Source of the DNA: Utricularia gibba | Lineage: Eukaryota > Plantae > Magnoliophyta | Reading direction: 5' to 3' | NCBI GenBank assembly: GCA_002189035.1 | Contig: NEEC01000012.1 | Coordinates: forward strand, 558,001-622,000 | DNA: 64,000 nt | Shown: piece by piece, positions 1,545 to 60,500 of the stretch | Layout of the letters: each line of letters begins with the position of its first letter | Position numbering within the stretch: the stretch's first letter is position 1 | Notes under the pieces: model-generated | Told to the model about the DNA's origin: nothing | Database searches by the model: none | The model's input: only the letters and a program-made list of their open reading frames with translations | Translations under genes and position numbers: made by a program

Positions 1545-1943
1545 CAATGGTTTAAAAAACGGGGTCCACGAAAAACGGTAACCAGTCCATTTCAATAAAC
1601 TTGACAAATTAGGGTTTTTGGGAGTATGTAACAAAAAAACGGAATTCTTTATTTTTATTCTTCTTTTCTAGAATTTGCGAGATCTTTGATCTAATCTTTA
1701 TTCTTGGTTTTCAAATAAACAATCATAATTGAAGATTTTATTTTGAAACTTGGATATGAAGCCGATGGTGAAGAGATACAAACCTAGAGTTTGATTTAAT
1801 GATTTCATTTGATTTTGAAGATATTACTTTGATGTTATTTTGATGTTTATGTGATTCTGAATCATTAGTTTTATTTGAATTTTAAACATTTTTTCATTTT
1901 CACCACAAACGTTTCAACCCTCGTATAGTTTTTTAAATCATTG
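1545..1943. mobile_element. hAT-type MITE (~399 bp) between the divergent ArgRS and TLP genes
   Basis: TIRs CAATGGTTTAAAAAAC / GTTTTTTAAATCATTG (1 mismatch). Perfect 8-bp TSD CTGGTCAC at 1537-1544 and 1944-1951. Confidence 0.85.
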
Positions 1944-2126
1944 CTGGTCACCACTACTAACAGTCTATTTCATTTTCCCTCCCTTTAAAAATACACGTAT
2001 TTGTATTTTGGCACATGGTTTTAATCTTATGATAAAATAATTAAAAAGAAATATTTCCCTTTGTAAAATATTCCACCACCCTACCGATTCTCTCTCCCTC
2101 CCCAAGCCTTTGCCTTTACCACTGCA

Positions 2127-5444: not shown

Positions 5445-5778
5445 TAAATATTTATCTAATTTACTTTCTTGTGATTTTAGGTTTATGGATCCTCAAAATA
5501 TATCATTGGATTCTAGCTTATTGTATTTACAAGATCATCATATTTCCATTCGCATTTTAAATCGTAAAAATTTGAACAATGTTTTTACATTTAAATATTG
5601 GAATAGTATTTTACGTGATTTAGAGATCTCTACTCTAGTGGCCAAAATTTTTTATTCTTGAGGATTCTATGGAGTTTTAAAAACATATTGAATTTTATAT
5701 GACTATCACTTACTTTTAGCATTGAAAGAAAGATGGCGGCCTGAACCAGAACATTTCACCTTTTTTGTGGAGAGTTAT
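5445..5778 (+). pseudogene. PMD (aminotransferase-like Plant Mobile Domain) gene, N-terminal fragment
   Basis: Translates with stops and frameshifts as DPQNISLDSSLLYLQDHHIS...LLLALKERWRPE(T)RTFHLFCGEL, matching the ERWRPETHTFHLPxGE motif. Confidence 0.75.
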
Positions 5779-5779
5779 T

Positions 5780-7320
5780 AATTCAAATTTATATTTTAAA
5801 TTTATTTACTTGGGTAAAGCAATAGTTGAAATACAAGTCAGGTATAATTATATCATTGATTATAATAAAGCATGATTTGGTGTGCGACGTGCATTTGAAC
5901 TTGTACATGAATCTTGAGAATCTTCAATGAATAAATTACCACATTATATATTGGTCGTTCAAGTGACGAATCCTGGTACAATTGTAGAGTGGTCTTTTTA
6001 TGATACATAATTAGGACCTAATCATAAAATATTCTGCTGTGTGTTTTAGGCTTTTAAGCCTTGCCTTGATGCATATCAATTATGTACTCCAGTGATTTCT
6101 ATTGATGCAACACATCTTTATGCAAGGTAATGTTTTAATTTTAGAATTTCGATTTATATATTTTATTATCTGTAATTTACAATTTTATGCACATGTATGA
6201 TCATAAATTACTAATTATTGTTTGTTGCGATTTTGGTGGACATATAATACCATTAGCATATGCTATTGTACATGATGAAAACATAGAATCATATTCATGG
6301 TTCATTGAGAATCTAGATGCTTTCATTATTCGACAACAAGCATGTACAATCATCTCGGATCGTCATACTGGTATATTAGCCGCTGTTAGTTCTATGCAAA
6401 CATTTACAAATGGCAGGCTTATTCATTGTTGGTGCCTTCGATATTTTGTTTCCAATTTTTACAAGTCTGTAAAAAATAAAGGCTTAAAGGAACATTTATA
6501 TGCGGCTGGTGCTACACCAAATAAGGTGAAATTCCTAGGATATATGGAGGAAATCTTTACTCATCACACGGCAGCACAATGGCTGAATCGTCCTAAGATT
6601 TTGAATAATACTGACAAATGGATGCTTGCATTTGACAATGGCAAGCGTCACGGATATTTGACTACAAATTAGGTAGAATGCATGAATGGAGTTTTTAAGA
6701 AAATACGAAGATATCCAATTTGCAGCACTATGGATTTTACTTTCTATTGGATGCAAATAATGTTTATTACAAAGCGTTAAGAGATCGCTCATTTCAATGA
6801 TAATAGAGAGATATGTTATTTCAAATTATTTTGTATTGAAATTTATAAATGATTCATACTTAATGTATTTGATAATGAAACAGATTTTCAAGGACAAGAC
6901 AAACGCATGGTTTCAAAAACAACAACAAAAAGTAGGGCGATTTCAATTATACTATTAGGATCCTAATCGTCTTGTTGGTTCTGTTTATGTTGTTTCGCGA
7001 AAACATGCAAAATGGAACCGACAAATAGTTGATTTGCAATCACAAACATGCACATGTGGAAAATTTTTGATTCACCGACTTCCTTGCTCTCATGCTCTAA
7101 AATGTGGGAAAATGTGTCGAATGCTATCAAACCAAATGGTTATTTGTGTATCGACTTTGAATTTGTTGCAGATGCAGTATGATGATAAAGTATTACAAGA
7201 TTTAGGTTAAGAAGTCAAATGGCCTCAAGCAATTTTGTAATTGTATCATGATAAACGTCGTGAGAAACATGGAAGAGGTCGTCGTCGTGGCAACAGAATT
7301 TCAAATGAAATGGATGGATG
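5780..7320 (+). pseudogene. MULE transposase, central DDE and SWIM zinc-finger region
   Basis: YNKA*FGVRRAFE...KLPHY...TNPGTIVEW; VISIDATHLY; IPLAYAIVHDENIESYSWF; IISDRHTGILAAV; HCWCLRYFVSNF; CTCGKFLIHRLPCSHA (~7050-7095). Multiple stops. Confidence 0.88.
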
Positions 7321-18410: not shown

Positions 18411-21400
18411 CATCCCTCTAAAGGAGAGTCTTCCCTGAGGTAAACTTTAGAGTGACTTCTCCCTTTCCAAGTGGATTATACCGAACCGTGAGATGTGAAG
18501 ATGGCCATGCGGAAAGCCAGAATTTTTGTGAAGAACAAGACTCTTATGCAGCCCATTAGAGAATGCTACGGTGGCAGGGGCAAGGAAGAATGCTACAATG
18601 ATCGGGGCAAGGATCTTCGGGGAACACCTTCCTCAAGGCACTCTCCAAAACCGAATCCCTTGAAATGCTTACCAAGAGCGGAATTTGAAGAACGCAAGGC
18701 AAAAGGATTATGTTTTAATTGCGATGAGCAGTTTAAACCAGGTCATAAATGCAGAAAGTTATTTGTGCTCGAATTAGCCTCAGATGAAGGTGAGTCATTA
18801 TCCTTAGATGGGGAACAAGACCCGGAATTATCATTGTTGGCGGCCACTGGGAGCTCCTCGACACGGACACTCAAAATACCAGGAGAAATTAAGGGGAAGA
18901 AATTGATCTTCTTGGTGGACTCAGGTAGTTCTCACACATTTGTACGGGCCTCTGTAGCTTATAAATTGCACTTATCGGTGGAACCCGTCAAGGGAGTTCA
19001 GGTAACAATGGCTAATGGGGAAGCTATTCCTTGTGTGGGATCGTGCGCAGCTGTTCACTTCGAATTGAAGACCAGCAATTCCTTGTAGACATCTACCTAC
19101 TCAATGAATTGGGATATGATGGGGTTCTTGGAATTAATTGGTTAAATTCGTTGGGCACAGTGAAATGTAATTTCGAAGAATTATGGGTCAGCTTTGAAGT
19201 AGGAGGGAAGAATTTTATGGTACATGGCAGTGATAATGCTAGGGAGATTTGGTCATTGCACCATCTCGAATTAGGTCTTCCCGATGACATGGGTCGAATT
19301 GTTCAGCACATCTCTGAGACATGCTATTATCTTCCAGGAACCGCAAGGATTACCTCCAGTGTGGCATTGTGATCATGGTATACACCTGCTGCCGGGCTCA
19401 AGGGCAGTAGCAAGGCGACTATATCGATATCCTCAAACCCAAAAGACAGAGATTGAAAATCAATGTGTTGAATTACTCTCCAAAGGGAGGATCCGAGAGA
19501 GTTCCTCTCAGTTTGCAGCCTCGGTTTTATTGATCTCCAAGCATGATAGGGGATGGCGCTTATGCATTGACTACCGAGGCTTAAACTCTATTACGGAGAA
19601 GGTAAAATTTCTCATACCTACCGTGGAAGAATTGTTATCTGAGTTGAATGGGGCTAGAGTATTCACCAAACTTGATCTTCGCTCGGGATATCATCAAATA
19701 CGGATGAAGGAGCAGGACATCCACAAGACAGCCTTCCAGACGCACAATGCTCATTATGAATTCCTCGTGATGCCGTTTGGACTTACAAATGCTCCAGCTA
19801 CCTTCTAGTCTCTGATGCATCATATTTTCAGACCATATTTGCGAAAGTTTGTTATTGTGTTCTTTCATGACATCCTAGTTTTCAGCAAGACCGAGTTGGA
19901 TCACTTGGATCACTCGCACGTTGTCTTTGACCTCCTACAAGCAAATCACCTCTTTGTAAAGAAGTCTAAATGCTTGTTCGTGGAGACCAAAGTGTCATAC
20001 TTGGGACACGTGGTAGGCAGGAATGGTCAAGGTGGATCCAGCGAAAATACAGGTCATTAAGGAGTGGCTGAGACCTCGGACGACCAAAGGCTTGCGAGGC
20101 TTCCTAGGCCTCACGGGGTATTACCGCCGGTTTATACAGCATTTTAGCAGAAAGACAGCAACACTCACAAGTTTTCTGAAAAGGAACAGCTTTAAGTGGT
20201 CACCTTAGGTTGAGGAGGAATTTATTGCCCTCAAATTGGAATTGACGCAGGCCCCTGTTTTAATTGCTCCAGACTTTTCACAAGAGTTTACATTGGAATG
20301 CGATGCCTCAGACACGGGAATTGGGGCGGTTCTCCATCAGGGACACCCCATCGCCTACTATAGCAAATGGTTGACACCAACCCAACATCTCCTTGCGGTG
20401 TATGAGAAAGAAATGATTGGCTTGGTTTATTCGATCAAGCATTGGACGCATTACCTATGGGGAAGGCACTTTAAGGTTTGAATGGATCATCAGAGTTTAA
20501 AATTTTTACAACAGCAGAAATTAGTGACACCATTCCAACAAAAGTGGTTGGGGAAGCTGTTAGGGTTTGACTTCGAAATAATATACATACCTGGCTCCAC
20601 TAACCAGGCAGCAGACACCTTGTCCAGGAGGGATCAAGAGGAAGTGGAGCTGGCTCATATATCGATACCCCAACCTGACTTTCGAACTCAAATAAAAAGG
20701 GCACAGGAGATGTCGACCGCCGCTCAAGAACGCAAAAGTAGCATACGTCAGGGACAAATGGAGGTAACAGGGAATTTATCCAAGGAATTATTTATTTTAA
20801 GAATCAGCTTTATGTGCCAGTGGACTCCGAATTACCGGAACAGATCATTACCATGATTCATGATGCTCATCATGAGGGGTACGCCAAGACACTCCATCGT
20901 GTATCTTGTGATTTTTATTGCAGGGCATGAAGGCACAAATTCAAGATTTTTGAAAAAGGTGCGACGTGTGTAGAAGGAACAAATCCGAGATGTCTCAATG
21001 GACTTCGTAGAGGGATTATCGACGTCGAGGAAGAAACAGGGATTACCGAATCGGTTCTCAAAGTATGCTCATTTACTCGCTATATCGCATCCATTTACTG
21101 CTACCTCAATTGCTAAGATATTTTTTGAGGAAATTTTTAAACTTCATGGATTGCCGGAATCTATTATGAGTGATAGAGATAAGATATTCACTGGTATATT
21201 CTAGAAGGAATTGTTGGGAATGCTAGGTACAAAGCTGTGCTATTCGACAGCCTACCATCCTCAATCAGATGGTCAAACCAAGGCTGTCAATAAAATCATG
21301 GAAACGTACCTAAGATGTTTCACAAGTGACAAGCCTACTCAATGGGCAAACTGGTTGTCTTGGGCAAAATACTCATACAACACCAGTCTTCAGAGCAGTA

Positions 21401-22922: not shown

Positions 22923-24732
22923 ATGTGCATGAGAAACCAGCTGAAGCAGGCGTACGCCAGCACCGTGAGAAACGGCGCTGGCGTCACTAAATATTTGATA
23001 AGCAAGCTAGTCGAACTTCCAGACCTGCAGTACGCCCACAAACTGCTCGATTATTTGCCTAACCCACCAATCTTCCTCTTCAACAAGCTAATTCAAACCT
23101 ATTCTTCTCGTGGTCCGCATTTTCAATGTTTGTTACTCTACTCTCAGATCCTTCATCGCTGCTTGACCCCCAATGCCAACTCCTTCACCTTTCTGTTTGC
23201 TGCTTGCGGTAACCTTGCTAATACTTCATTAGCTTGGATGTTGCATACGCACTTTATCAAGTTCGGACTAGATCATGACGTCTATGCATCTACTGCTTTG
23301 ATCGGCATGTATGGTGAACTTGGTTTATTGCATATGTCTCGAAAAGCGTTTGATTTGTTGAGTGGGAAAGAATTGCCGACTTGGAATTGTTTGATAGCAG
23401 GATATGCGAAAAATGGTGACTTGGAGGAGGCGTTTCATTTGTTTTCCCATATGCCTCAAAGAAATTTGATTTCGTGGACTGCTTTAATATCAGGGTATTG
23501 TCAGAATGGGATGTACAGAGAGGCTTTAGAATTGTACTTGGAAATGGAGAAACAAGGAAACTTGAAGCCTAATGAAGTGACCATTGCAAGTGTTCTTCCT
23601 GCTTGTGCAAATCTTGGTGCATTGGAAATTGGAGAGAGACTGGAAGCCTATGCCCGTGAAAATGGCTTTTTCAAGAACGCGTTTGTGGGAAATTCTTTAC
23701 TTGAATTGTACACTAGATGTGGTGCTATTGACAAGGCAAAGCAATTGTTTCAGGAGTTTGGTGGGAATAGAAATTTGTGTTCTTGGAACTCTATGATCAT
23801 GGGTTTAGCAGTTCATGGGAGGTGTGAAGAAGCTCTTGACCTCTTTGATGTTATGCTGGTAAGGTTTCTTATGAACACACACTTTACTTCCACATTTTTT
23901 CATGCCTTTGCGACTATAAACTGTTTGAGAATATCGTAGATATGGCTTATGCTACTAGAGTAAATGAATTTTGTTTGTCAAAATGCTAATTTTGATTTTC
24001 TTTTACCTTTTGTTGTCCAATATCTAGTTCTAGAATGTCATTACACCTTGATTGAGATGAATGTGTAATCTCGGTCTCATCACTTCTCATAATAAAAATA
24101 TAAAAATTCAAAAGCATTCTCAACGGTCGTGTGACTCTCACATGCAGAGGAATCGGGTGTTACCTGATGATATAACCTTTGTGGGTGCACTTCTGGCATG
24201 TACTCACAAATGCATGGTTGAAAGAGGCAAGGAGCTCTTCAATTCCATGGAGCAGAAATTTCACATTACACCAAAGAAGGAACATTATGGCTGCATGGTT
24301 GATCTTCTCGGAAGAGCAGGATTACTAAGGCAAGCCTATGATGTGATTAACGGCATGCCCATGAAACCAGATTCTGTTGTGTGGGGAACACTGCTCGGGG
24401 CTTGCAGTTTTCATGCCAATGTTGAATTTGCAGAGAAAGCAGCAGAGTCCCTGTTTTTGTTGGAACCTTGGAACCCTGGTAACTATGTCATTTTATCAAA
24501 TATATATGCTAAAGCAGGCCTGTGGACCGAAGTATCGAAGCTAAGGAGGTTTATGAAAGGGTTCATTGTTATAAAAGGCGCAGGACATAGCCTGATCGAG
24601 GTAGGAGGCAGGATTCATAAGTTCATTGTAGAGGATAAGTCGCATCCCTTGTCTGAGTTGATTTTGGCTGTGTTACATCATGTAACATTTCAAATGAAGC
24701 TTCAGGAATGTGTGGATCATTTAGAAATGTAA
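22923..24732 (+). CDS. PLS-class PPR protein with E/E+ domain (resembles Arabidopsis At5g08510 as I recall it)
   Basis: Exons 22923-23858 and 24148-24732, phase 0, open frame (~506 aa). PPR motifs (ISWTALISGYCQNG, KPNEVTIASVLPACA, EHYGCMVDLLGRAG, VVWGTLLGAC) and E domain (LEPWNPGNYVILSNIY...GHSLIE). Confidence 0.93.
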
Positions 24733-26018: not shown

Positions 26019-26918
26019 ATGGCGGTTGATGCTGAGAATACGTGCTTTGAGAATATGGGTTATGGTTCCTTCACAATGCAAACCTCTCAGCAGGATTGCT
26101 TAATGGGATCTGGATTTGGTTTTCAGGATGGCCTTGGTTGCTTCCCCACGATGGAAATTCTTCATTTTGCTCCTCATGATAATCTTGTTTCTTCTTCCTC
26201 ATCATCCATGTACCCTGGTTTTCTGCCCCTGGATATCCTTCAGTCGCTGTCTTGTGAGCTTGAAAGGCAGAGAGTGGAAATGGATTGGTATCTTCAGATG
26301 GAGGTACGTACGGTGCAAAATCTCGCATTTATGCAGGCATTTCAGGACTACATTTTGATGCTGTGCACACTATTTAAGGAGGTTTATACAGTTTCTGAGT
26401 TTCATGTCTCCTACTGCGAACAGAATTCGAGAATGAGGAGCCGCCTTTTTGTTGAAGAAACCCGGCAGAGAGAAATCATAATGGAGAAATACGAATCAAA
26501 GCTGAAGAGTCTGATTCTGTGCAAAGACCAACAGCTCGCTGCTGCTAAAAACAGAGCGAAGGAGCTCAGGAACTCGTTGCAAGCTGCAGAAATGGAATCC
26601 AAGGCGTGGCAGAAGGTAGCTGCTGAGAAGGAAACAACCCTCTCGTTCCTCAGAAACAGTCTCAAGGCAGCGCAAGCTCAACAACGCGAAATGGCGTCCT
26701 CCTGCGCTTCTTCTTCTTCTTCCTCAGGATCAAAAGCAGCACAGCAGAAGAAGCAGGAAGAGCCCCTGGGTTGCCAACTGTGCAAAACGAGAAGCTCGTG
26801 CTGTGTTTTCTTCCCTTGCAGGCATCTTTGCTGCTGCAATCAATGTGAAGCTCTTTTAGATCACTGCCCTGTCTGTGGAACAGTTAAGGAAGCAAGTTTA
26901 GAGGTGCTGCTGGCGTGA
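26019..26918 (+). CDS. BOI-related / S-ribonuclease-binding-protein family RING E3 ligase
   Basis: Exons 26019-26303 and 26424-26918. ELERQRVEMDWYLQME-NSRMR coiled-coil region, ESKAWQKVAAEKE, C-terminal C3HC4 ring CQLC..CVFFPCRHLCCCNQC..CPVC. Confidence 0.9.
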   Translation: MAVDAENTCFENMGYGSFTMQTSQQDCLMGSGFGFQDGLGCFPTMEILHFAPHDNLVSSSSSSMYPGFLPLDILQSLSCELERQRVEMDWYLQMEVRTVQNLAFMQAFQDYILMLCTLFKEVYTVSEFHVSYCEQNSRMRSRLFVEETRQREIIMEKYESKLKSLILCKDQQLAAAKNRAKELRNSLQAAEMESKAWQKVAAEKETTLSFLRNSLKAAQAQQREMASSCASSSSSSGSKAAQQKKQEEPLGCQLCKTRSSCCVFFPCRHLCCCNQCEALLDHCPVCGTVKEASLEVLLA

Positions 26919-27989: not shown

Positions 27990-30600
27990 TCTTATATTAA
28001 ACTCACACATATATCATTTGCATTTTCGATTTGCAGAATAATCTTTTTGAACTAAGTTGATGAAATATATCATTTTGTATTTTTCTTTGCAAAATACATT
28101 TTAAACATACCATTTTTATTTACGAAATGTAATTAATGGTCATAAATCCATATACATTAAAACAAAATCAAGCACACGTACTATTTTGTGGGTGGTTGAA
28201 TATTAAATCCTATTTCTATTTTCCTCACAACTTATTTTTACCTCAAGTTTAGATTTCCTGAAATAAGTTTTTACACATAATCACCATGTCCAAGATTTCC
28301 ATCCACGAATTTTCTAATTAAAATATCCTAAGAAATCAATACCTCAATTTTGTGATATATGTTTGTGAGGCAGTAAATTTTCTTCCGGTGAAATCTATAA
28401 TTTCATTGTAACAGATTATCGAGATTTCATAACATTAAGTAAATATAGTTGTAGATTTTCATGTTATTCGTATGAAAACCAAGTTTTACTTTATATTAAG
28501 TAGAAGCAAAATAAAAATACATAAAAATATAATTTCTTAACATTTTTCAAAATGATGTATTTTGCAAACCGAAAACATAAAATGATGTATTTAACCAACT
28601 CAACTCATACACATCATGTTTTGTAACACTTGTATCACAAATAATATTTTATGATACAAAATTACATATAAACACCCAATTGAATTATTTTGATCTAATG
28701 TTTGATTTGAACAAAAAAGGTAATTATAAAAAATGGATTTACTACTTTGAAAATAACATTTTTAGTTTATGTAAAACACAAAACTATTATTGTCACCATA
28801 TTATTTCAATGTCATTCCAAATGGATGATGTAATTTGATTTAAATCACGTTCATGCACGTTATCATTGAAATATTCAACATCTTCACTTAAATAATTCAG
28901 TTTTAATTTTATATCATCTTCATCATTATAACACCTAATATAAATTATATATATCCATTGTAACAAGAACTAAAATCTTTTGTGTCCTACACGAGTAGTC
29001 TCCTGATATATTGATAATCATTTGTAATTCATAAGGAAAATTGAACTCAATTTTAGATCTTCTTTGGATCTCTAAAATGGTCCACAATACTAAACTTTAC
29101 AAGATGATATTGTTCTTCCTTGTAAATAGTGCCAATAAACTATATGCGTTGTCATACCCTACATCACATAACTAATATTTCCCTAAAATACAACATCTAT
29201 TTTAATATTTAACGTATAATCTTTCTTCTTGTTTTTCAAACTAAATCTTTCTTCTTGTTTTTCAAACTAAATCTTTCTTTTGTTTTCGGTCTTTTTTGAG
29301 TCTTTGTTTGAAAAAAAAAAATCCAATAACAATTCCATGTGGATACGATCTTATTTTATTACTTCAACGGTTTCTATGCACTTGCAAAATCTTCATCAAG
29401 TTTTTGGCGCCGTTGCCGGTGAATGGTATTCCTTCGGATTTTCTTTTCTGATTTCGTTTTAGGTTATTTCTTATTTTTCTGTTATTTTTGTTGTTTTTCT
29501 GTGATTGCGCACTTGCGCAAGCAACTTTTGTTTTCGATTTTCGTTCATCATTTTCTTGTATAAATATGAGGAGGCTTGATCAAAATGTAACATTTAATCT
29601 CGAATTCGAGAAAATTGATAGGCGAATTAGATCAAGAAACCGGTCTACACACCAATATTATCCTTTGGTGGTAGATTCTAGGATGCGTCTCGGAAGATGG
29701 ACGACTTGTTTTATTCTGAAGAATCACGTGTTGAGAGATGCATTCTTGAGCACAAATCACATGACCATCAGGTAAATTATTTGATTTCATATTCAAAATT
29801 GACGCCTTCACGCAGGTACAATAGGGATGAATTGATGCTTGCGCAAGCATGGACGAAAAAACAAAATATTACTACACCAGAGAAAGGACTGTGAATGAAT
29901 CTCATGCTTATTGTAATGATGTTGGGTACGAAAAAAATTGGGGGACCAGAAATCAGCAATACACCATGTATCAATCTTATTCATTGTTAAATTCAGAGGA
30001 TAACAATTCATTGTATCAATCTTCTGAAGATGAAGAGTTAGACGTTTCTAGTGAAAGACAAATTTTACTTTATATCGATTACAAAAAAAATTTAAAAAAA
30101 CGAAAATATGTGAATATGTATTTTTCCAAACTTTTTCAAAAAGTTTTATTTTGCAAATCGAAAACGTAAAATGATTTATTTCATCAAATTAATCAATATA
30201 CATCATGTTTTGTAGTACTTATATCACAAATAACATTTTGTGATACAAAACTAAGTAAAATATCTAGTTAAATCCTAATTTATCAAATGTTTGACTTAAA
30301 GTCTCAAACAAAAAGTTTGTTATAAAAAATAGATTTATTTCTTTGAAAATAACATTTTTAGTATATGCAAAACATCAAACTATTGCCATCACCATAATAT
30401 TTCAGCACTTTTCCAAATGAATGATGCAATTTGATTCTAGACAATGTTCATATACATATTATCATTAAAATATTGAGTATCTTCTCTTAAACAAATTCAG
30501 TTCATAATCACTAATGAATTGCATCTCAATATCAATTTTATGTCATTTTCATCATTATTGCACTTAATATTAATGATGTATACCTACTATTACAAGAACT
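27990..30600. repeat. AT-rich repeat family: diverged direct copies (~28530-28980 and ~30100-30600) plus an inverted partial copy (~27990-28110)
   Basis: Shared TTTTGCAAA(C/T)CGAAAAC(A/G)TAAAATGAT..TATTT..CATCATGTTTTGTA blocks read by eye. Probably DNA-transposon derived. Confidence 0.55.
29218..30070 (+). mobile_element. Athila-type Gypsy remnant: LTR 3' end, tRNA-Asp PBS and degraded gag start
   Basis: ...CTTCATCA AGTTTT TGGCGCCGTTGCCGG (PBS 29405-29419), followed by MRRLDQNVTFNLEFEKIDRRIR (Athila gag-like start). A 26-bp tandem repeat lies at 29218-29287. Confidence 0.72.
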
Positions 30601-32956
30601 AACGTAAGCAATATTCTGTAAAACTTTTATAACTTATTTTTACTTTTGTAGATATAATTTTGAAAAGTAAAAGTAAACTTAACAAAATAAAAAATAAATT
30701 CAAGTGTTATAAACAAATTTTTACTTTTGAACTAAATTTATTTTTATTTATAATTTTCATTATCTTTAATTCATCACATTCTAAATATTGATTCATTAGA
30801 TTCTAGTGTTCAATATCATGATATGAAAGGCATGTTGATAGAAAAGATTACAATCAAACAACTAGTTGAGAAATTGAAGAACTCCAATTAGTAACGTATG
30901 TAATCCATTCACCTAAATAAAAAGAAAACAAGTAAAATAGAAAAAATTTACAAAATACCATAAGCAACAACCCTAATAAAAAGTACTCTTGAATTCTATA
31001 CTACAAATGCTGGTTGATGAATTTTGGGAGAAGTTTTCACAAACCTCTGAAAATCATACATGATGTAATTTTTGTAAAAGTTTTTTTTATCATATGATTT
31101 TAAAAGTACTTTTGAAAAGAATGAGGTTCTCAAAAAAATAACTTTTATTTTCATGCAAGTAAAACTTAATCATAAAAGTTTTGCAAAACATTCTTATATT
31201 CTCTTGATATGCTGATAATCAATTTGAATCCGTAGGAAATAGCAAATTCAATAATAAATCTTCTTTGAATATTTACACAATATGTAAAAAGTATATATCT
31301 TAACATTTTGTGATATATGATGTATTAAGAATCAATATCTTAAAATAGAGTATGTACATAGTGTTAATAGCTATGAATGGATAAAGAAATAGTAACGTTA
31401 TAGCATTACGTGTTATAATGTTATTGGCAACCATTATAGTATTGTTACTCATTTATTAAGATTATAAAATAAATCATATCACTAGAACCATTTTGGTTCT
31501 TACTGTAATTAGCATTTTTCCTACATGTGATTTTAATTCCTACAACTCATATTCTCATGTATAGATATGTTCGAATATGTTTTGACAATGATGTTCAATT
31601 AAATATTTTTTACTAGGTACTTTAGATCAATTTGGAATTGTCTAACATTTCCTAAGTGTTTTATGATTATTAAAACTACGTTGATAAAGAAAATATTGTA
31701 AAAAATAAAATCAAACTCAAATTCAATGTTATATAACATAATAAAACAATTATACATATAAGAATTCGTGTAACTAAAACTTAATTGTAAATCTTTAATT
31801 GCAAGTGTCTACATATGTATACTTTTATAACATATAAAAAAACATAAAAAATAAAAGATAAAAATAGTCAAAATATTTATTTAAAAGTTGAGATAGTGAG
31901 ATGTTTATAAGAGATAATATTTAAATCTTATATTTGGTTTACATAATAAATTTAGATAACATTTTATATCTATTTTCATTTTAAATCTTTTATTTAAATT
32001 TTTCTAATTTATTTTTAAATATTTATCTGAATTTTCAATCATGTAATTACCAAATAGATTAAGTTTTAAAAAATTATATGTAAACTATTTATTTAAATTT
32101 ATAAATATAAAAAATACTTTATTTGTTTTTTATGCTCTATAATCTTATTGTATTTATATTCACAAATTATATTGATTTCGATTATGGTTAAATTAAAATA
32201 TTTTATCTGGTAAAACATGAAAAATTAAACATGTTAAATATATTATTTTCTAAAATTCAAAATATATAAAATTAAATATCATATATTCAACCAAATTTTT
32301 AACAACCTCATCAATTCTGGAAATCAAAGTAAATAAGTATATCTATTTTACCATTCGGTTGAATAAATTGAGTACAAACAACTTTAAAAATAAATAAAAA
32401 AATATAATTTAGAGTGAGACAAAATCCATTATCATATATTGGTCAATGGTAATTAAATTAATTTTATTTTTAAGTAAAATTTTATTTTTAATAAAAACAT
32501 GATGTTTCATATTTATGTAAAACTCATGTTTTGATTTTTAAATCCACACATGTCAATTACTTAATCTAGTATTTAGAATACAAATTATTAAGTTCTTTTT
32601 CAGAATATGCTTTAATATGTGTTTCAACTTTAAAAGCATTTTTTTTGTTAATAAATGTGACAATTCAACGGAATTATTGAACTCTCTTTGTGCAATGTTT
32701 TATTTCTTTAATAAATAAATTATTATTGTATTAATTAAAGCAATAATAAAAAGGTTTTATTATTGTGAATATGACTACTATTAGTTATTAGAAAACATTA
32801 TTATGAGAAAAAAAATTAGTAGTAATAAGAAAATATAAAAATGATGAGGGAGCGCGAGAAAGAAGATCGTGGTGCGCAGAGACGCGCCTTCTCCGCCTAA
32901 GGGAACACAAACCCTCGCTAACGTTGTAGCGAATTTTGGAAGGCTTCGTTGGAACG

Positions 32957-34612
32957 ATGGGGGAGCTTGGGTCTATGGTGGTCGACAAGCTCAACCAGGT
33001 TAAAAAATTAGCTCGGGAATTCGCCGACAATTTCTTCCGAGACTCCTCCGCGCGCAATCCGGTACCTACGCCCTTCAATATTCTATTTCCTTTTCCGCTG
33101 ATCTCCGACGAGTGTGGCATTTGGTTGTTGCTGTTTGCTGATTTCAATGGTGTTATGTTTCAAGACCTTGAGTCACAAGGCATGGTTAGATTTAGCATGA
33201 ATTCGTGGTGTGCCGGGATTCACTGGTCTGATTGCTGGTATTCGCCTGTTTGTTGGCCTAGGTAGAACCAAGGTGTGACGGGACCTTACTAGTGTTTAAA
33301 CCATGTGATGTACAGATTCAAATTCTCAAAAGTTTGCAACGGGAGGCGTTTTCAGATATTATGAAACTCAGGGACCGCCAAGAGAAGGTAGAAAAACTGA
33401 TGAACTTGTATAAATCGTCAAGGGGAAGTCCATTCCAAGAAGTTGGAACTCTTGTAAGAGGAAGGGTGGATGTTGCTGCAGCGTTGTTTCTAATTGATGA
33501 TGTGGATGAGCACAAGTACGAAGCGATTCAGAGAACGGGTATTCCAACGGGGATCGATGCAAGATTGACATTCAAGGCCCATCCTGGGGATAAAGACGCA
33601 CTTGTTGCTGAGTTTATCGCCAATGAAAAATCTCGAAATGATGCATTGGGAGGTCCACTTTCCCTCTCGAAAGTTGTCTACTCGGCGCATATTTGTGACT
33701 GGCTATCTGCATTCGCCATTCCCCTCGGCGCACAGTATCGAGATGCCCTGTCTGCAAAAGATTCCTATCAGGTATGTTAGAGATGAATTTTTTTAGAACT
33801 TGTGCACGGTGATCAGATTTTTATTCCTCCTGCTTTAGTTTGTTTAGACTGTATCCCTTGGCTTCAGCAGTCACCATATTATGTCATGTTTTCAGGAAAG
33901 GGGCTTCACTGATTATTCTGGGTTTGGCCCTCCAATTCTGCATCAATACAATGGTAGCGCCGTGGGCATAACGGTAACAAAGTCGAGGGTTGCCGCGTCA
34001 TTGGCTCAATTTGTTTCTGGCCTGGGAATGCAGATCAATTCTGCAGGCATGTGCACCGGTTTAGCTCACACCCACAGCACTTTTGGAGAAATTGCATTGC
34101 TGGCCTCCAGAAACACGAAGCTGTCACTGTTGGGTGTTCACCGCCAGTCCAGACCTTCCGGCCAAGGTCTCAATCTTGGAACGTTTACCCTCCCCGTAAG
34201 CATTTTCAAACGCAACCACTTACCAGAGGCGTCACTGCCGGCCCTAGGTGATGACGAAGACAGCCCGACGAGCTGGGAAAGAAGCATATCGGACAGTTCA
34301 GTTGCTCTTCTGCTCAACTCAGAAGTTGATGAGAGCAGAAGAATCGGTGGATGGGCAGAAATGAGAAACTCGGACCTAAACAACTTGGAGTGTGCAGTTA
34401 CGCTTCGTGATACGCCTGAAGATGATCTCGGCTGGGGTGTAACAGTCGGAGGGTCTCTACGGAAACTTCAGAAGTTCGACCGGTTTCAGGTGGAGGGGTT
34501 CCTGAACCTGAATTCCGGCAGCAGATTCAAGATCCAGCCTGCGTTTCTCTACGTAAAAGATGGCTCTACGCAGTTTCCAGCGCTGATGCTCCGTTGTAAT
34601 TGGAACCTCTGA
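32957..34612 (+). CDS. Conserved-looking uncharacterised protein (~425 aa), putative beta-barrel/porin-like
   Basis: Exons 32957-33061, 33316-33771 and 33896-34612 are all phase 0 with canonical GT-AG and join into one open frame. The porin resemblance is inference (see findings). Confidence 0.85.
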
Positions 34613-34911: not shown

Positions 34912-36501
34912 TCAGGCAACAGCTTCGACCGGCCCATTGTTGGATCTGAAACCACCGCCCCTACGGGGGCCTCTCCCACGTCCACGTCCACGCCCTGCAG
35001 CACAGAGCTCATAGCCATCAGGTAACGAAAAATCAGACATGCAAAACTGCACTGAAAAAAGGCTGCAGTTGCCAAGTACCTCTGGGAGCTTCTTGGTGGT
35101 AACCTTCGGCATCATACTCAGTTTCCACAGGAGGACCGTTGTAGCCACCCCTTCCACGGCCATAGTAATTACGAGCCCTACCACGTCCTCTGCCCCTATT
35201 ATATCCTCGATCTCTATCATACCCGCCATCCTCGTAATCCCCGGAAGGAAAACCATTCCCTAGAAGCAGAAGAGAACATTAAATCTTCAAGAATAACGTA
35301 GCAAAGAGAAATGAATTTCCATAACTGAATGCTCAAAACAGAAAAATGTACCAGATGGGCCTCCTCTCGGTCTCCCCTCCCCCTACCCATGCGGCCTATT
35401 TGAGCAGGAGGTGATCCCTCTACAGAAGGCTATTGAGTTAGCGGTGGTCCATAAGATTCTTAAAAATATTGATACAAAAATATATACACAAGGCCGAACC
35501 TCCTTCATAGTCCAGCTCTGCTGAAACCTTGACTTGATCCGCTGGTATGGGTGGTTGGTACCTACAAGACACAGCAAATAAAGGTAAGTGCAACCGCGGC
35601 TGCAAACGAAAGACAGCAGAGAAATAAACCACAGTAAACTAGATAAGGTCAATGAGTGAAATGGTTTCGTTGGACTCCATGGCGTGTGGTGAAAGACCAA
35701 ACAGGAGCCACAAAAACTGATCAACAGAAAGAGGATTGCTCACCCAACATTTGTCTTGTCCAGCTCCTTTTTCGAGAGTGTTATAATGACCATAGAGACT
35801 TTCCTTGTAGTTTCAAGACTAATAACAAAAATAAAACATTGCACCATAAACTCATCAGATAACTCAAATCCTACGGAACGAACCATTTATCATAGTAAAC
35901 ACGAGCAAAACCCTATCCTTACGTTTGGAGCCCTTCCTCCAGTGGTTCCCATGTGTCAGTTATATCAGTGGACTGGATTGTAGTGATTTGATGAAGGCCA
36001 ACAATTCTCCTCTGAATGGGGCAACAAATAATTGACAAAAAAAAAAAAAAAGAAACGCTGAATCAAAAATTAAAAACGGAAGTAAGATTCTGCGGGAAAA
36101 AGTGGCCTGGAAAGTCCAACCTTGATTAACTCAACAATCGTGACAGTTTTATTGATGGCGCTTCCCATCGCCTTTAAAACTATCTCATCAGAACCCCTTT
36201 CCTACAGTACGGGCCGGTGACATGTCAGAGAAATATATGAGCAAAAACCCGAAAAACTCTTCTCCCTAAACATCCGAACGCCTAACCAGCGATTCTCCAG
36301 ACAATCAACCAAAAGCACGCGACAGTCACAAATAAACCCGTACAAAACAAAAAAACATAACAAGTACTGAAAAATAACCTGAAGAAGAGTCATGGCGTAT
36401 GTGATATAGCTCCGCATCTTCCCCTTGCTTGTAATCCGAATCTCGTTCTCGTCAATGGGTGTCTCCACCTTAGGCTTCTCCACCTTCTGGTATCGATCCA
36501 T
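34912..36501 (-). CDS. ALBA: Alba/RPP25-like nucleic-acid-binding protein with RGG tail
   Basis: Eight exons: 36379-36501, 36121-36201, 35923-36011, 35744-35818, 35500-35561, 35352-35419, 35080-35259, 34912-34994. MDRYQKVEKPK..ENEIRIT, KAMGSAINKTV, RRIVGLHQIT, DTWEPLEEGL, GYQPP, RGG repeats. Exon 35352-35419 is 68 nt where 69 is needed (C run at 35374-35377). Confidence 0.94.
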
Positions 36502-37452: not shown

Positions 37453-40049
37453 ATGGGGAAGGCGAGCGAGCTTGGGCACCTCTTCGGGGCGGTGTTCCTC
37501 TACTGCTTTTCCAACTTCATGGTGGCTCCCGCGATCACGGACGCCTCCATGGCCGCCATCTGTCCCGGAGAGAACGAATGCTCCCTCGCCATTTATCTCA
37601 CTGGAGCCCAGCAAGTGGTATTCTTTTTTGTCATCATCTTTTTTATACGCGTTAGTGCGGCAGGGACACTGAATCCGATAATGGATACTGCATCCTCATG
37701 ACACACTCTGCTTTTACGCATTTTACTGGGTTGGAATAAGTGATAAAGCCGTCCTCCAAGGTGCAGAGCCGGGGTCGGCCCCTGCTCTGCGCATTGATTC
37801 TTCTCTTCGTTTCCTCTCTAATCATCATAGATTAGTAGATGCACGTCACCCGTTTTGCAGCATGTATGGAGCACTTTCACGTATGTCTGTTCGTATAAAC
37901 AACCAAAACTGCCACTTTCATAATCAAGAGACTTTTTTTAAAGAAAAACTCCGATCAATTGTCAAAAAAACTATTTGTCGTAGAGTGGGTAGGCACACCT
38001 CACCAAACTCTATTTGTCAATTTATCTGATTGATGATAGTGAGTGACGGGCGCAGATCATCGGGGTGGGATCGCTTGTTGTGATGCCGTACATCGGCACC
38101 CTGTCCGATACCTATGGAAGGAAAGCGATGCTCACCATCCCCTTCGCGCTCTCCATCTTCCCATTGGGTGCCCAACGCAGAGCCCTTACACTTTTCCTGA
38201 ATCACTTGCTTTCCTTCTGAAATACAAGATTGTTGTTGCAGCGATCCTGGCTTACCGCAGGACCAAGCGCTTCTTTTACGGTTACTACATCTTCAGAACC
38301 GTCATCGCAATGGGTACGGAGGGAAGCGTCCAGTTTCTTTCTTTGGCGTATGCAGCAGACAATGTCCCTGAGAACAAGAGGGCGGCGGTTTTTGGTGTGA
38401 TGTCGGGGATTGCTTCCTCGTCCTTCGTGTTGGGAAACCTCACGACGCGCTTTCTCTCCGTCCCAGCTACTTTCCAAGTAACCTTCGTTGTCCTAGTCAG
38501 TATTCTTGTTATGAGATGACCAAATTACATTTCCCTGAAGCCGATGGGGGTGTCTCTCGATCGCTAGGTTGCTGCGGTGATGTCTGTAATTGCGTTTCTG
38601 TACATGAGATTCTTTCTTGCGGATTCTAATCCGAAGCAGGGTGAGCATGTCACAGAGGCGCATTCCCTTTTGTTGAAGAAACCGAAGCTTCCCAAGGTTC
38701 TCACGTCCTTGGACGACGCCATGTGCTTGCTGAGAACAAGGTTTCCGCCTCGGAACACCCTAAGAGGGAAACCCTTTTCTGTTTTTTTTTTAACATTTCT
38801 TTGTTTGCAGCCCCACGTTCTTCAGAGTTGCAGTAGTTGGGTTCTTAATCAATGTTGCGGATGTGGGACTCTTCGCTTCGTTGAACGTATGAAAAGTCTT
38901 TAAAATAGTAATGCAGATGAATGAACCTCTCTGAACAATTCATTCATTTGAATGTGTTGCAGTTTTTCCTCAAGGCCCAGTTTCATTTCGGAAAGGACCA
39001 GTTTGCTGATATCATGGTCATCGTTGGTGTCTGCGGCTCGGTCTCACAGGTGAAGACCTCGTCCTTCTTCTTCTCCTGTTTTTCCAATGCATCAAGAACA
39101 AGCCCTGAAACCTCGGAAACTTGGTCGCAGTTGCTGGTGATGCCGATGCTGAGCTCCGTTGTGTGCGAGGAGAAACTGCTGTCTCTCGGCCTGTTCTTCA
39201 CTTCTGCTCATGTAACAAGACCGTCTATTTTCTTAACTCCGAGAAACAGCAACTGTTTTCTCATCTAACATTGTGATCCTTGTGTTTTTCCATGAAGATG
39301 ATACTCTACAGCGTGGCCTGGGCGCCTTGGGTACGTATGTGTTATGCATGCATTTTCTTTCCGCCATTCCAAGGGTGCTGATTCCTCCCCTCCAGGTTGC
39401 CTACGTTGCAGCCATCCTCCCCATTCTCTCCACTCTCGCCTTCCCCTGTGTAAGTCCAAGTCCTTCCTCTCTTAACGCGATGAGTTGCAGCATTTTTACA
39501 TGTCCGCTGCTGCTTCTGCAGCTACGGAGCATTGCGTCTAAGCAAACCGGACCCCATGAGCAAGTACGCCCTACCTTCTTGAAACCATGGTGCAGACATC
39601 CCTTTTTTTTTGTAATAATTTGTAATTGTGGAATCAGGGTAAGACACAGGGGTGCATCACAGGTATCAGTTCCTTCGCCAGCGTTGTCTCCCCACTGGCC
39701 TTCAGCCCCTTGGCAGGTAGCCTCACTCATAATACCATTATTCCCGATTAGATGTATGTTTGTGCCAGAATAACTTCAAATTTGTAATATTTCCTCTTCT
39801 GCCATAGCTGTGTTTCTGGCGGAGAATCCTCCCTTCCATTTCCCGGGATTCACCCTTCTCTGCGCCGGCCTTGCGGCGGTAACCGACTCTCATTCCAACC
39901 CAGTTTTTCATTCATATAAGTGAACGCTTTACTTTTTCCCTTTTTTTGTTCACTTGCAGATGATAGCCTTCTTGCAAAGTTTGACGATAGAGGCACCGCC
40001 TGAGTCCAGGGCTGTGGAGCCGCCTGGAGGTTTTGCTTTTGCCTGTTAG
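37453..40049 (+). CDS. Major facilitator superfamily transporter (HIAT1/tetracycline-transporter-like)
   Basis: Thirteen GT-AG exons with consistent phases: 37453-37617, 38056-38167, 38242-38477, 38568-38740, 38811-38886, 38963-39049, 39131-39211, 39298-39330, 39396-39449, 39522-39563, 39638-39716, 39808-39878, 39960-40049. MFS motif GTLSDTYGRK, SLAYAADNV, LRSIASKQTGPHEQGKTQG. Confidence 0.93.
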
Positions 40050-55918: not shown

Positions 55919-57501
55919 TTACAGCTTCCCCACCATCAACTTCTCCCTATACTCCTTCATTTCCTTCTGGTACCTTTCTTTGTCCTTCAAGCCATAGTTC
56001 TGGTATACCTGCAAGACGGAAGGGCGGATGGGATCAATCTGGTTTCCATTAGAATCCAAAAGGCCCCCGGGGGTGGACTGACTCACCACTCTCTCTTCAG
56101 GGGTGAGGCTGTTCCAAGACTCGCCGATCATTTTGGTGAACTCCCTCTCCCTGTTGGGATACAGGGACTTGAGCATGGAATGCTTCTCAGCAAAGAAGAA
56201 GTTGTAGCCGCTCCGGTTAGGCTTGGGGCGGCCGGGATCACTCGCCCGCCTCTTCCTGGAGCGGCGGCCCGCCTTCTGATGCTGCGCCTGGTACGGCACG
56301 ATGGCGGTGCAGCCCGGAGGGGCGGAGGAAGGGGTGGAAGAAGCCTTGTGGTCTGGATGGTACAGGACTCCCTTCAAGGTCTCGTTCCCCAGCCTCACCG
56401 ACACCAGGTATCCGCAGTCGAACTTGCCGTCGATGGTCCCTAGTGCATCCAAACAAGGTGACCCTGTGGAACCAGGAACCAACCCAATGTGCACCATGTA
56501 TGTATGTATGTATGTATGATGGCAATGCACATTTACTCATTCATCATTTAAAAATGGCAAGCCACCATTGCTTATTAGCAAGTATTATTGGGAAGGAAGG
56601 AAGGTATTTGTGGCAGGGAAATTAAATGACGTGTTCCATAAGGCCTAATTACCATTCTACCCCCCCGTAGCGCTCCTCCTATTCAATGTTTAGTAACTAA
56701 CCAAAGACGACGGCGGATGCCAAACCAGCAAACAACACAAGATTACACCAACCCACGACGCGAGCCCAGCGCAGACATGCCACAGCCACAGCCACAGCCA
56801 CAGCCACAGCACGCGGCCGCCTTTCTCCTCCTCCTAATTCTAAGGTGCTCCCGACCGAGGGAAAAACTCATAAAAAAGGAACACATTTCCTTGACACCCA
56901 GTTGCTAGTAATAGTTCCTATCTGTAAACAACCCCTTTCTTGAAAATACGGCATTAAGTGCTGCAGTGTGGAGGATTGCAAAATGGGGAAGCGAACAAGT
57001 TGAGAGTGTACCTGAGATTTGATTGCTCAGCACTGGGGTTGGGGTTGGAGGACGGGACTGCGACCGGAGAAAGTAGAGGAGCTCGTAGCGGTACAGAAGA
57101 GTGTGATAGTGCTTCCGCAGAGCATAGGAGGCACTCGTAGTCGTCGGTGAGAAGTCGAACACGGAGCTGATTTCTCTCCATTTCTTCTCACTCACCACCT
57201 TATCGTATCCCCTCTTTTGGTAACCTCCATGTACAGAAGATGCAGGTTCAGCTCCTTGCCTCCAATCACCGGAATCCTGATGCGGAGCCATTAGCTAAAA
57301 TCAGTCAAATGTATCGACCAGGGAGGGATTGGACGGGGGGAGTAGGGCTTACAGAAACTTGGAGCCCAGAGAAAAATGGAAGCTTCTGAGAGTGTTCATA
57401 AAGAGAGTAGAGTCGGCGACGACTTCTTCATGGGCGGCGAGGGGGACGCCATTGACGGCGGCGGCGGCGGCGGCGGTGGTGATTTCCTTCTCCGGCGACA
57501 T
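55919..57501 (-). CDS. HMGB9: ARID-HMG box protein (HMGB9/10/15 group)
   Basis: Exons 57353-57501, 57012-57276, 56087-56463 and 55919-56008. ARID IPVIGGKELNLH..KKWREI..TTSASYALRKHY; GTIDGKFDCGYLV; HMG box PKPNRSGYNFFFAEKH..KDKERY. Apparent 1-bp loss in the C run at 57209-57212 (RGGYDK). Confidence 0.93.
56779..56810. repeat. (GCCACA)5 microsatellite in the ARID-HMG intron
   Basis: Read directly from the sequence. Confidence 0.9.
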
Positions 57502-60500
57502 GAGATGGGATGGATTATTATGTGCGTGTTGGGAAAATGCAAAGATAAGCCTGGTAATTAAGGAAGCAAAAATGTGTGTATATATGTGGACTTAGAGAGG
57601 GGGAAAGGGAAAAGAAATGAAGGCCGTTAGGGAGGGAGTGTAAAAAGCTTGGCTTTTTCTTACCAACCAGAATTAATCATACCCAAATCTCAATGCTCTT
57701 TTTTTGTGTAAGGAAATCAATGGCTGAAATCATTCAAATTTCCCATTGGCCAAGTCTTAATCAACGCTTCAGATTCTCGCTTTTCCATGGACGTCGGGGG
57801 CAACACCCCCCCCACCCCAACTCTGTACCAGTCTCCTACGTACCCTCCACACCCTGACAGGAAAAATGAAGAGCAACGGGCGGGTTGGATCCTTGAGAAC
57901 CAGTTTTGCAAGTTAAGATTCAAGCTTTCCAACCTTATCTGTGAGAGAGAGACAGAGGTGTGTCGATGAGGGCCAACCATACGAAAAAGAAAGCATTATT
58001 ATTCTCTTGTGATGGGGTTGGGTTCTCCATGAGCTTGCTGGGTGTACGCACACACACTACATGTGAAAAGGCTGCAACCCTCTCACCCATCTTTCTATCA
58101 ATCAACTCTTTGAGACGAAAATCACTTGTACATGGAGGAGGGCGTGTCGCATGCTGATTAGAAGTCCTCTTGGAATGACACGGTACATGTCCCCTCCTCC
58201 TCCTCCTCCTCCCTGTTCTGGTTTCTTCCCTATGAATGAGTTGCTTTGCTCGTTGCATAGGGAAGAGGAATTGGAATGGGAATGGCAAGGCATATACCGA
58301 ACGTCCATATGAGCAATTAATGCTGCAATACTTTCTTTGGCTGTATTGACATCACAGCAAGATTCTTGAGTACCAAAATCCCTGTGTGGGTTCACCCACA
58401 CTTCACACAAAAAAGCAGCTTTATGCAGTGGGGGAGCTTGTTCCTATTGGTGGAGTATTAAATCCTCTGTACAATCTACACCATTTGCGCGGTTTGATCA
58501 CAACCCATCGCAATCTCGCCATCCCTGTACCTTGAGAGCGGGTATTCCTTACCCGCTCACGCTGGCTGGAATACCCCAAGAGTGGGGATCTGTTGTTGGG
58601 ATTAACTAAAAAGAAAGCATTCATTTCATTCCTAAATGAAGAGAGATGGAGGGGCGAGGAGGAGACTAGGAAGTTGCAAAATGGAAAGCTGACCAGAAAC
58701 CATGAATAAGACAGTGACAGATCAGTTTTGGTTATCTTCAATGTCTCCGTTCCAGTTGGAAAGGAGAAATGGGCTCCCCTCAGTGATTCTTTGGGACCTA
58801 CTTAAGGGAACCACACCAACCCAAACCGAACAAAGCATTTAAGGCACCTCAACCCGCTCCCCATTCATTTATCGACAGGGCCTCTTCATACAACGCAAAT
58901 TTTGTCAAGTGAAGCACTCAACAACCGAGGAATGTAGCTAATTTGGCCATTCAAATGATGAACAGGAGCTCAAGCTAAACCTAAATGACTGAACTGGGTA
59001 CGATCGATGCAAAATGGTGGACCTGCGAACAGGGAAACTCCTAATCCACGTACCCTGTTGCAAATAAGATCCTTGATTCAAGAAGCAGGCATACGCATGT
59101 TATAGGGGGTTCAACGGATTCCGAAATTCCCCTCATTCAGAAACCCTCATTCGCTCATAGCTCAACAACCAAAGCTCGAATCAAACCATGATCCATTTGA
59201 TATCATCATGAAAAGCAGGCGAACCACCGCGTCCGTAGGCGCGATCGCCGCCTCATCATTATGCGATTCAGATTTCCTTCTCTTCTCTGGTGCTTGTCTC
59301 CGATGCCCGGCGGAGGTTACACGGTGTTTAAAGAAGACCACTAAAACAAAGATTAGTTGTAGATTAGCAGGGGGAAGGGGGTGCAGAAGTTCAGTATGAT
59401 TCAGGCCCAATTCCCCAATTTTCGCAGGCGGTGGGCCGCTCCATATCCAAATCCTGAATCTGTTCCCTGATGGTGCCATCTCGCAGCCACCTCATCAAAT
59501 ATCTATTGGTGTATGTTTCTTTATGTTATTTTTTATTTGTGTATTTGAAGTCAGGTTGTTGGTGAATTTTTGTGTAAAAGTTCCAAAGTACCCCCATTCA
59601 GTTAATTAAAAAAAGGAGAAGTTTAATACAATGCCGTTACGTGGTGATGTTCAAAGATACGATTCTCCAAAAGTCTAGTCCAATCTTGGATAGAGGAGTA
59701 TGCATTGTTAAGTGAACCTACAATCACATGAATGTCAAATTTAAATATTCAACATAAAAACCAAGATAACAAATCCAAAAAAAACATTATATAAGACGTA
59801 AATGCCAATTTCAATATTCAACATTAACATTTCTAGAATAAAAAGATATTTCTAGAATTACCTCATAAGAATAATATAAGAGTACAATAAGAGTAATTTC
59901 CAAAATCTAGAAATAAATTAAAAAGGGAAAAATCTAAATATTTACACACTATTGATTACTTAGATAAAAAGGGATTATAGGTATACATGCTTGATGAACA
60001 ATTTATTTTACTCGAGTAGACTTTTATGGTATATTTTACAAGGTCTAACTTTTAAGAAAAACCCAACAAGTGATATCTTCATATATTAAGTAACTATTGA
60101 GAGTTTCTTTACCCTCCATAGTCGTGTGCTAGATATGCTTCATGACAACTTCTAACTCTATCATTAACTTTCTTTCCCTCCTAGCATAAGCTTCTTCCAA
60201 GTGCTTTTAAAGACAGAGCATGAGAATGTGTGTGTGTTCTTAGGAGTAAATCTTCAAACTTATCTCTTAGAGCGCATTTCATATTTGAGTATAGGTGAGA
60301 ATGCAGGTTGGGTTTGTCAATAAATGGGTGTCAAACGTAGGTTGCAAGTGGGTAAATACAAAAGAGTATTAGGGCATTTTTATTTATATTCGAAAATGTT
60401 GACATGGATGTATATTTTTACTAATTAAGTTTTCGAACATCAATAAAGGGAGGGTTTCTTATTTTCAAAAATTGTCCATACAAAAACCCAATTTTCTCTA

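Follow-up and report, generated by a model that had tools for sequence, protein, structure and literature searches.

At positions 32957-34612 of a 64,000-nucleotide (nt) stretch of Utricularia gibba DNA (contig NEEC01000012.1 of assembly GCA_002189035.1, 558,001 to 622,000 of the forward strand; hereafter the window, in whose coordinates all positions are given), a gene on the + strand encodes a protein of 425 amino acids (aa). The question raised by this locus is whether that protein is, as an initial annotation of the DNA proposed, a plastid outer-envelope porin inherited from the cyanobacterial ancestor. The window is plant nuclear DNA and shows no sign of human origin; the gene is the orthologue of Arabidopsis At1g11320 (UP1) and clearly belongs to the plant At1g11320/UP1 family. 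On the sequence evidence set out below, its product is a remote but clear homologue of the SLH-OprB outer-membrane porins of cyanobacteria. It is probably a nuclear-encoded chloroplast-envelope protein descended from porins of the SomA/SomB, Slr1841 type, having lost the SLH domain and signal peptide and kept a stalk and a 16-strand barrel. The central idea is not new, the SomB link of At1g11320 having been published by Imai et al. (2011; PMC3045335); what is added is a controlled full-length alignment, the distribution of the family in Viridiplantae, a consistent 16-strand model, a C-terminal series, and the rejection of two database names.

The gene model is complete, with all exons present, because its product aligns end to end with full-length plant proteins. 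Exon 1 (32957-33061 (+), 35 codons, aa 1-35) is followed by intron 1 (33062-33315 (+), 254 nt, GTACCT...GTACAG), exon 2 (33316-33771 (+), 152 codons, aa 36-187), intron 2 (33772-33895 (+), 124 nt, GTATGT...TTTCAG) and exon 3 (33896-34612 (+), 238 codons plus TGA, aa 188-425). Both introns are GT-AG, the product spliced across intron 1 is collinear with its homologues, and the 425 aa contain zero internal stops. Exon 2 would encode the stalk, strands beta1-beta5 and the start of the beta5-beta6 loop, and exon 3 the remainder of that loop and strands beta6-beta16. Identity to Genlisea aurea M569_08367 is 62% from end to end (residues 3-425 versus 2-416), and identity to other Lamiales homologues is about 55-60%. 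No hydrophobic transmembrane helix is present in the window protein, because its highest 19-residue Kyte-Doolittle mean is 1.23. The description given in the initial annotation, an intact three-exon gene for 425 aa without long hydrophobic helices, is therefore correct, and the four sequence strings that it quoted were all found, at residues 39, 75, 384 and 417.

Orthology with At1g11320 is apparent along the whole protein. The window protein and the Arabidopsis protein (424 aa) share 40.7% identity (residues 8-425 versus 7-424, E 3e-105), and are alike in full-length collinearity, length class and C-terminal signature. A profile search of 1.84 billion representatives finds the cluster that contains Arabidopsis Q9SXB7/NP_172599 (At1g11320) at E 7e-164, another homologue carries the title 'like AT1G11320', and the string SDGRTIGL, quoted for At1g11320 by Imai et al. 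(2011), is present in the Arabidopsis sequence used here. In a maximum-likelihood gene tree the window protein is sister to that of Genlisea (100/100), inside Lamiales, and the remainder of the tree tracks asterid relationships and the species tree; on the evidence of this tree, the window gene is a vertically inherited orthologue, probably from a species of the Lentibulariaceae. Unlike At1g11320, it comes from the fast-evolving lineage sister to Genlisea and has a few otherwise invariant positions altered: 29 of the 33 columns invariant across 36 angiosperm homologues are retained, and one of the four changed columns is the start Met, an alignment offset. Because the window protein is a full-length collinear orthologue, the literature on At1g11320 applies to it, and the window gene by itself contributes just one further orthologue.

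The same profile search matches 210 proteins at E up to 0.001, and taxa were taken from the best 150 of these. Members identified among the matches listed all belong to Viridiplantae: seed plants (angiosperms, Ginkgo and Welwitschia), other land plants (ferns, Selaginella and the liverwort Riccia), the streptophyte algae Closterium, Mesostigma and Chlorokybus, and the chlorophyte Myrmecia bisecta. The family thus spans green algae to angiosperms. Members from ferns, lycophytes and streptophyte algae carry N-terminal extensions of about 150-500 aa before the stalk, which have no Pfam domain or SLH and may be either true domains or gene-model fusions.

The comparison with cyanobacteria was built on FSTTTKLxGE, which we take to be a signature of cyanobacterial SLH-OprB porins (SomA/SomB, Slr1841/Slr1908/Slr0042; NF033921; TCDB 1.B.23). 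When this string was back-translated and scanned against a prokaryotic genome collection, at least 120 stretches were found, nearly all with titles that name cyanobacteria, so that the signature is close to diagnostic for cyanobacteria among the matches listed; 96 complete open reading frames (ORFs) were extracted as the comparison set. All six ORFs that were spot-checked are SLH plus OprB by Pfam, with OprB scores of 71-208 bits. A tblastn search of one cyanobacterial porin against plasmids returned mostly genes that bear the annotation 'iron uptake porin' or else 'carbohydrate-selective porin OprB', and no non-cyanobacterial OprB barrel appeared in it, the non-cyanobacterial matches being confined to the SLH region. 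The cyanobacterial genes are often arranged in tandem, with three consecutive copies in Scytonema hofmanni UTEX 2349 (507-6306 of its stretch) and pairs at three further cyanobacterial loci.

Against the 96 porins, hhalign gave a probability of 98.0% (E 1.6e-13) for the 36-sequence angiosperm alignment and of 99.6% (E 1.5e-24) for a broad green-lineage alignment with the window protein as master. The latter match extends over 363 columns, pairs residues 31-425 of the window protein with porin residues 135-539, and reaches the last residue of both families. The barrel part alone gave 97.1% (E 4.8e-11), the coiled coil alone 21.9% (E 1e-3), and a reversed control 0.1% (E 0.62). Identity is about 16%. 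The stalk, the first-strand signature, the 16-strand barrel and the terminal strand are all aligned. In the coiled-coil stalk (aa about 35-70, nt 33059-33420 (+) across intron 1, as delimited by the models and hhalign), LKSLQREAFSDIMKLRDRQ pairs with cyanobacterial LqRLqeEFaAELAtLrgRVD. In the first barrel strand, TLVRGRVDVAAALF (33448-33489 (+)), T-LVRGRV is placed opposite TTTKLxGE and makes this strand the counterpart of the TTTKLxGEV signature; the motif is degenerate there (TLVRGRV), and T80 and G84 are conserved across kingdoms. Further on, FQVEGFLNLN...IQPAF stands opposite HlEAFYky...ITPGv, and LMLRCNWNL opposite GtlRTTFtF. The resemblances at both ends, which the initial annotation had pointed out, are accordingly homologous alignments and serve as anchors of the match.

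In one of the porins the SLH domain lies at residues 73-115, and the alignment opens at residue 135, so that the plant protein begins directly after the position of the SLH domain; the match is collinear, and the earlier claim of an ordered correspondence with the SLH domain missing is upheld. Present in all six cyanobacterial ORFs tested, the SLH domain (PF00395) was found neither in the window exons nor in angiosperm homologues nor in the long fern and algal forms. The place of the cyanobacterial signal peptide and SLH domain is occupied by the helix of exon 1, an N-terminal amphipathic helix (aa about 4-27, within 32957-33061 (+)) that has no counterpart in the cyanobacterial porins, the hhalign match beginning only at aa 31. 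Compared with those porins, the plant protein lacks both signal peptide and SLH domain, and it is encoded in the nucleus for a plastid without the pyruvylated wall polymer that SLH binds.

The window protein retains 10 of the 11 positions that hardly vary between green plants and cyanobacteria, and L42, E45 and R56 of the stalk are nearly invariant across kingdoms. The C-terminus forms a graded series, from RTTFxF in cyanobacteria through RSxWxF in green algae and Welwitschia and RSSWSL in land plants to RCNWNL in the window protein. Land-plant proteins end in Leu, whereas the cyanobacterial porins end in Phe; the last strand of the window protein (34568-34609 (+), ending ...PALMLRCNWNL) is homologous to the cyanobacterial strand ending ...GTLRTTFxF, with the terminal Phe replaced by Leu, and is a candidate beta-signal.

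A hidden Markov model (HMM) of the 96 cyanobacterial porins matches 118 of the 143 plant proteins searched at E<1e-3 (best 42 bits), nearly full-length and collinear, with best E values of 0.43 and 1.7 for reversed and shuffled plant sequences, respectively. Fern and gymnosperm members score 57-65 bits over their full length. The window protein taken singly matches weakly (9 bits, E 0.004 in the 143-sequence set), and the significance of its link to the porins comes from the family profile, not from the single sequence. Among the 18,950 models of NCBIfam, NF033921 por_somb, 'iron uptake porin', is the sole recurrent family; it matches 25 of 36 angiosperm members when E values of up to 10 are admitted (best E 6e-8), and also Welwitschia (46.8 bits, 1.7e-12), Chlorokybus (39.4 bits, 2.8e-10) and Adiantum (1e-8).

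With an identity of only about 16%, and with the coiled coil alone at E 1e-3, the similarity might instead reflect convergence of amphipathic barrels and coiled coils, or the later arrival of the gene in the green lineage by transfer, in place of inheritance from the plastid ancestor. Either would be improbable on the evidence at hand. Convergence is hard to reconcile with a collinear match over 363 columns that runs to the last residue of both families, with reversed and shuffled controls that are negative, with common signatures outside the membrane strands and a graded C-terminal series, or with por_somb as the sole recurrent match among many bacterial barrel families. A late transfer would be compatible with red algae and glaucophytes not being seen among the best 150 of the 210 profile matches, but the family is present in Chlorophyta (Myrmecia) and in early streptophyte algae (Mesostigma and Chlorokybus). 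Because of this presence, the acquisition predates the split between Chlorophyta and streptophytes. A primary endosymbiotic origin of the plant family is likely.

The predicted fold agrees with homology to porins. AlphaFold models were made of two homologues, those of Genlisea and Welwitschia. The Genlisea model, from an angiosperm-only alignment (pLDDT 74.7, pTM 0.64), has helices at 3-26 and 34-69 followed by 16 long strands and two very short ones, and the Welwitschia model, from an alignment that mixed green-lineage with cyanobacterial sequences (pLDDT 79.7, pTM 0.72), has helices at 8-28 and 34-68 and exactly 16 strands. Cyanobacterial porins were included in the alignment of the Welwitschia model only, and the Genlisea model, made without them, agrees with it. 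A closed 16-strand porin barrel after an N-terminal helical stalk is thereby predicted, in keeping with the 16-18-strand barrel and N-terminal coiled coil expected by the initial annotation. Both models place a long conserved loop after strand 5, the site of the constriction loop in classical porins, and a disordered acidic loop between strands 10 and 11. Mapped from the models onto the window protein, the beta5-beta6 loop corresponds to aa 173-207 (33727-33955 (+), spanning intron 2); it lies where 16-strand porins carry the constriction loop L3 and, by analogy with porin architecture, may play the part of L3. The variable acidic beta10-beta11 loop, with pLDDT <50 in both models, corresponds to aa 276-318 (34160-34288 (+)).

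When the two models were compared with the PDB by Foldseek, the top 50 matches of each were all porin-type barrels, nearly all with 16 strands (E 1e-8 to 1e-10), including OmpC/OmpF. The best matches are trimeric porins, among them OprB and the SLH porin OmpM1. OmpM1 of Veillonella parvula (PDB 8bys, 8byt, 8bym), an outer-membrane attachment porin, is matched at E about 1e-8 to 1e-9 with a TM score of up to 0.66 on the target. In its structure a stalk precedes a trimeric porin of 16 strands; stalk and 16-strand barrel are in common with the plant models. OmpM1 retains the SLH domain that the plant protein lacks, and no sequence relationship between the two was detected. The carbohydrate-selective porin OprB of Pseudomonas putida (PDB 4gey), itself a 16-strand barrel, is matched at rank 3-5; it belongs to the Pfam family matched by the cyanobacterial relatives, whereas the plant proteins do not match PF04966. 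Unlike the plant proteins, OprB has no coiled-coil stalk, and its sugar selectivity is not to be assumed for them.

These fold matches also bear on the conflicting names under which the family is found in public databases, none of which is backed by Pfam and which also include 'Clusterin alpha chain like' and 'acyl carrier protein 2'. Members from Castilleja, Cuscuta and Eucalyptus are named 'Bacterial surface antigen (D15) domain-containing protein', which would make the protein an Omp85/D15-type barrel related to Toc75, OEP80 or Sam50. Such a relationship is very improbable, since no Pfam match (PF01103 included) and no POTRA domains were found, no Omp85 protein is among the top 50 Foldseek matches of either model, all of which are porins, and the only recurrent NCBIfam match is por_somb. 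The name was rejected on the absence of PF01103 and POTRA and on the porin-only fold matches. Even less credible is a GDSL esterase/lipase with envelope lipids as its substrates, a name carried by Arabidopsis Q9SXB7 and by proteins of Quillaja, Parasponia and Tasmannia and adopted in a cold-acclimation preprint, which discusses At1g11320 as a lipase from its database name. Lipase_GDSL (PF00657) is not matched in Pfam, the GDS tripeptide is absent from both the window and the Arabidopsis proteins, and the predicted fold is a beta-barrel and not an alpha/beta hydrolase; for these reasons this name was likewise rejected. Misleading database names have thus already led one study to treat At1g11320 as a lipase.

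Published work on At1g11320 places the protein in the chloroplast envelope. Imai et al. (2011; PMC3045335), who asked 'Is At1g11320 a novel Arabidopsis BOMP?', reported a match to cyanobacterial SomB with an HHomp probability of 100%, and for this candidate beta-barrel they favoured the chloroplast as location. Bouchnak et al. (2019; PMC6601204) found Arabidopsis UP1 enriched in the envelope by proteomics, with an enrichment factor of 8.0, and UP1::GFP labels the chloroplast envelope only (PMC6601204); UP1 has since been employed as an envelope marker (PMC13263057). Literature searches on the function of UP1 as a beta-barrel and on plastid homologues of cyanobacterial porins found only Imai et al. 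(2011). The plastid-envelope location proposed for the window protein is therefore established for its Arabidopsis orthologue. Of the fuller proposal, a plastid outer-envelope porin of cyanobacterial ancestry, the family-level porin homology and the envelope location are supported, whereas residence in the outer membrane, channel activity and descent through primary endosymbiosis are what we infer, together with a trimeric state and the substrate of the plant protein.

The protein would in this respect join a known group. OEP21, OEP24, OEP37 and OEP40 are beta-barrel channels for solutes in the outer envelope of chloroplasts, and so have the compartment and the general role proposed here for the plant UP1 protein. 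Similarity between any of them and the window protein surfaced in none of the searches made. We know of none of the four that derives from major cyanobacterial porins. Some of the known chloroplast outer-envelope channels are listed in PMC3045335.

Descent from a cyanobacterial SLH-OprB porin, which we consider probable, would imply that the signal peptide and the peptidoglycan-binding SLH domain were lost in the plant lineage, the SLH domain having become dispensable once its wall ligand was lost, and that the coiled-coil stalk and the 16-strand porin barrel were retained. Insertion of the protein into the outer envelope would depend on the signal in its C-terminal strand. There, the barrel, probably as a trimer, would form a porin-type channel that passes small hydrophilic solutes or inorganic ions, with the conserved beta5-beta6 loop narrowing the pore and the helical stalk projecting into the intermembrane space.

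The behaviour of the cyanobacterial proteins suggests a further role. Proteins of the Slr1841 type are described as inorganic-ion channels that also anchor the outer membrane via SLH, and when Slr1841 is repressed the outer membrane of the cyanobacterium becomes detached (10.1101/2020.03.24.006684). The plant barrel could in the same way be mainly a structural or tethering element, whose stalk connects the outer envelope with partners that lie in the intermembrane space or the inner envelope and echoes the ancestral anchoring. The detachment phenotype would fit such a tether, as would the structural match to the attachment porin OmpM1 and the conservation of the stalk from algae to angiosperms despite SLH loss, with its residues L42, E45 and R56 near-invariant across kingdoms. 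A mainly structural role nevertheless seems unlikely: no ligand domain is retained by the seed-plant proteins, and residues of the beta5-beta6 loop and of the barrel are conserved as strongly as the stalk, as expected of a functional pore. The tether and channel roles are not mutually exclusive. A more far-reaching proposal, to which we give somewhat less than even credence, combines them: the major porin and tether of the cyanobacterial outer membrane may have outlasted the origin of plastids and persist throughout the green plants, encoded in the nucleus and devoid of SLH, as a trimeric ion or solute channel of the outer envelope in which the stalk still organises the intermembrane space.

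Several observations weigh against the porin interpretation of the window protein or limit its reach. Pfam OprB (PF04966) is unmatched at E up to 10 by the window exons and eight homologues, so that the significant OprB match expected by the initial annotation did not materialise, and a Pfam scan of the three window exons and 18 homologues gave no match at all, including to OprB, SLH, Bac_surface_Ag and Lipase_GDSL. The 100-bit curated cutoff of por_somb is reached by no family member scanned, and the window exons give no NCBIfam match. Because OprB is unmatched in Pfam and por_somb stays below its cutoff, the protein is a remote relative and not a member of either family by curated thresholds. 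PDB sequence searches with the single protein and with the family profile gave nothing meaningful, and the fold evidence comes from models of proteins 62% and about 30% identical to the window protein. The window protein itself is altered at sites invariant in the 36 angiosperm homologues, from R to S at aa 41 (LKRLQ; 33436-33438) and from W to C at aa 353 (QWAV; 34391-34393), and it lies, as does the Genlisea protein, on a long branch of the gene tree; long branches and changed invariant residues together suggest accelerated evolution in the lineage of Genlisea and the window protein. The evidence does not tell descent from the plastid ancestor apart from the transfer of a cyanobacterial gene at a later time. 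The published location work on At1g11320 does not separate the outer from the inner envelope, and conductance, oligomer or mutant data for the family were not found in the literature.

Among the genomic surroundings is a convergent ORF with an Arg/Gly-rich tail (RGRGRGRGPRRGGG) at 34912-35256 (-), which ends about 300 nt downstream of the stop codon of the porin gene and has no Pfam match. A thaumatin-family gene (2304-2981), a C3HC4 RING finger (26019-26918), an MFS transporter fragment (38043-39773) and an ARID and HMG-box protein (55919-58288 (-)) have no evident link to the porin gene. A pentatricopeptide repeat (PPR) gene with E/E+ motifs at 22923-24732 (+) consists of two ORFs (338 and 223 aa) about 120 nt apart, and may be an interrupted gene or contain an intron. 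Transposon remnants comprise a MULE transposase fragment (6187-6672) and a stretch of retroelement sequence that encodes gag-aspartyl protease and reverse transcriptase (18495-19808). The intergenic blocks at 4001-6000 and 30001-32000 are very AT-rich, with a GC content of about 0.21 versus 0.43-0.51 in genic stretches.

The family bears on the question of where the solute channels in the outer envelope of chloroplasts come from, and of what became of the outer membrane of cyanobacteria in endosymbiosis. Homologues of Slr1841 have been stated not to be conserved in plants (10.1101/2020.03.24.006684), and survival of the major porin in green plants, if true, contradicts this. Arabidopsis lines and GFP constructs exist, so that the question is directly testable. 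With its conservation from green algae to angiosperms, its envelope location in Arabidopsis and its homology at the profile level, the UP1 family is a counter-example to the view that porins of the Slr1841 type have no plant counterpart.

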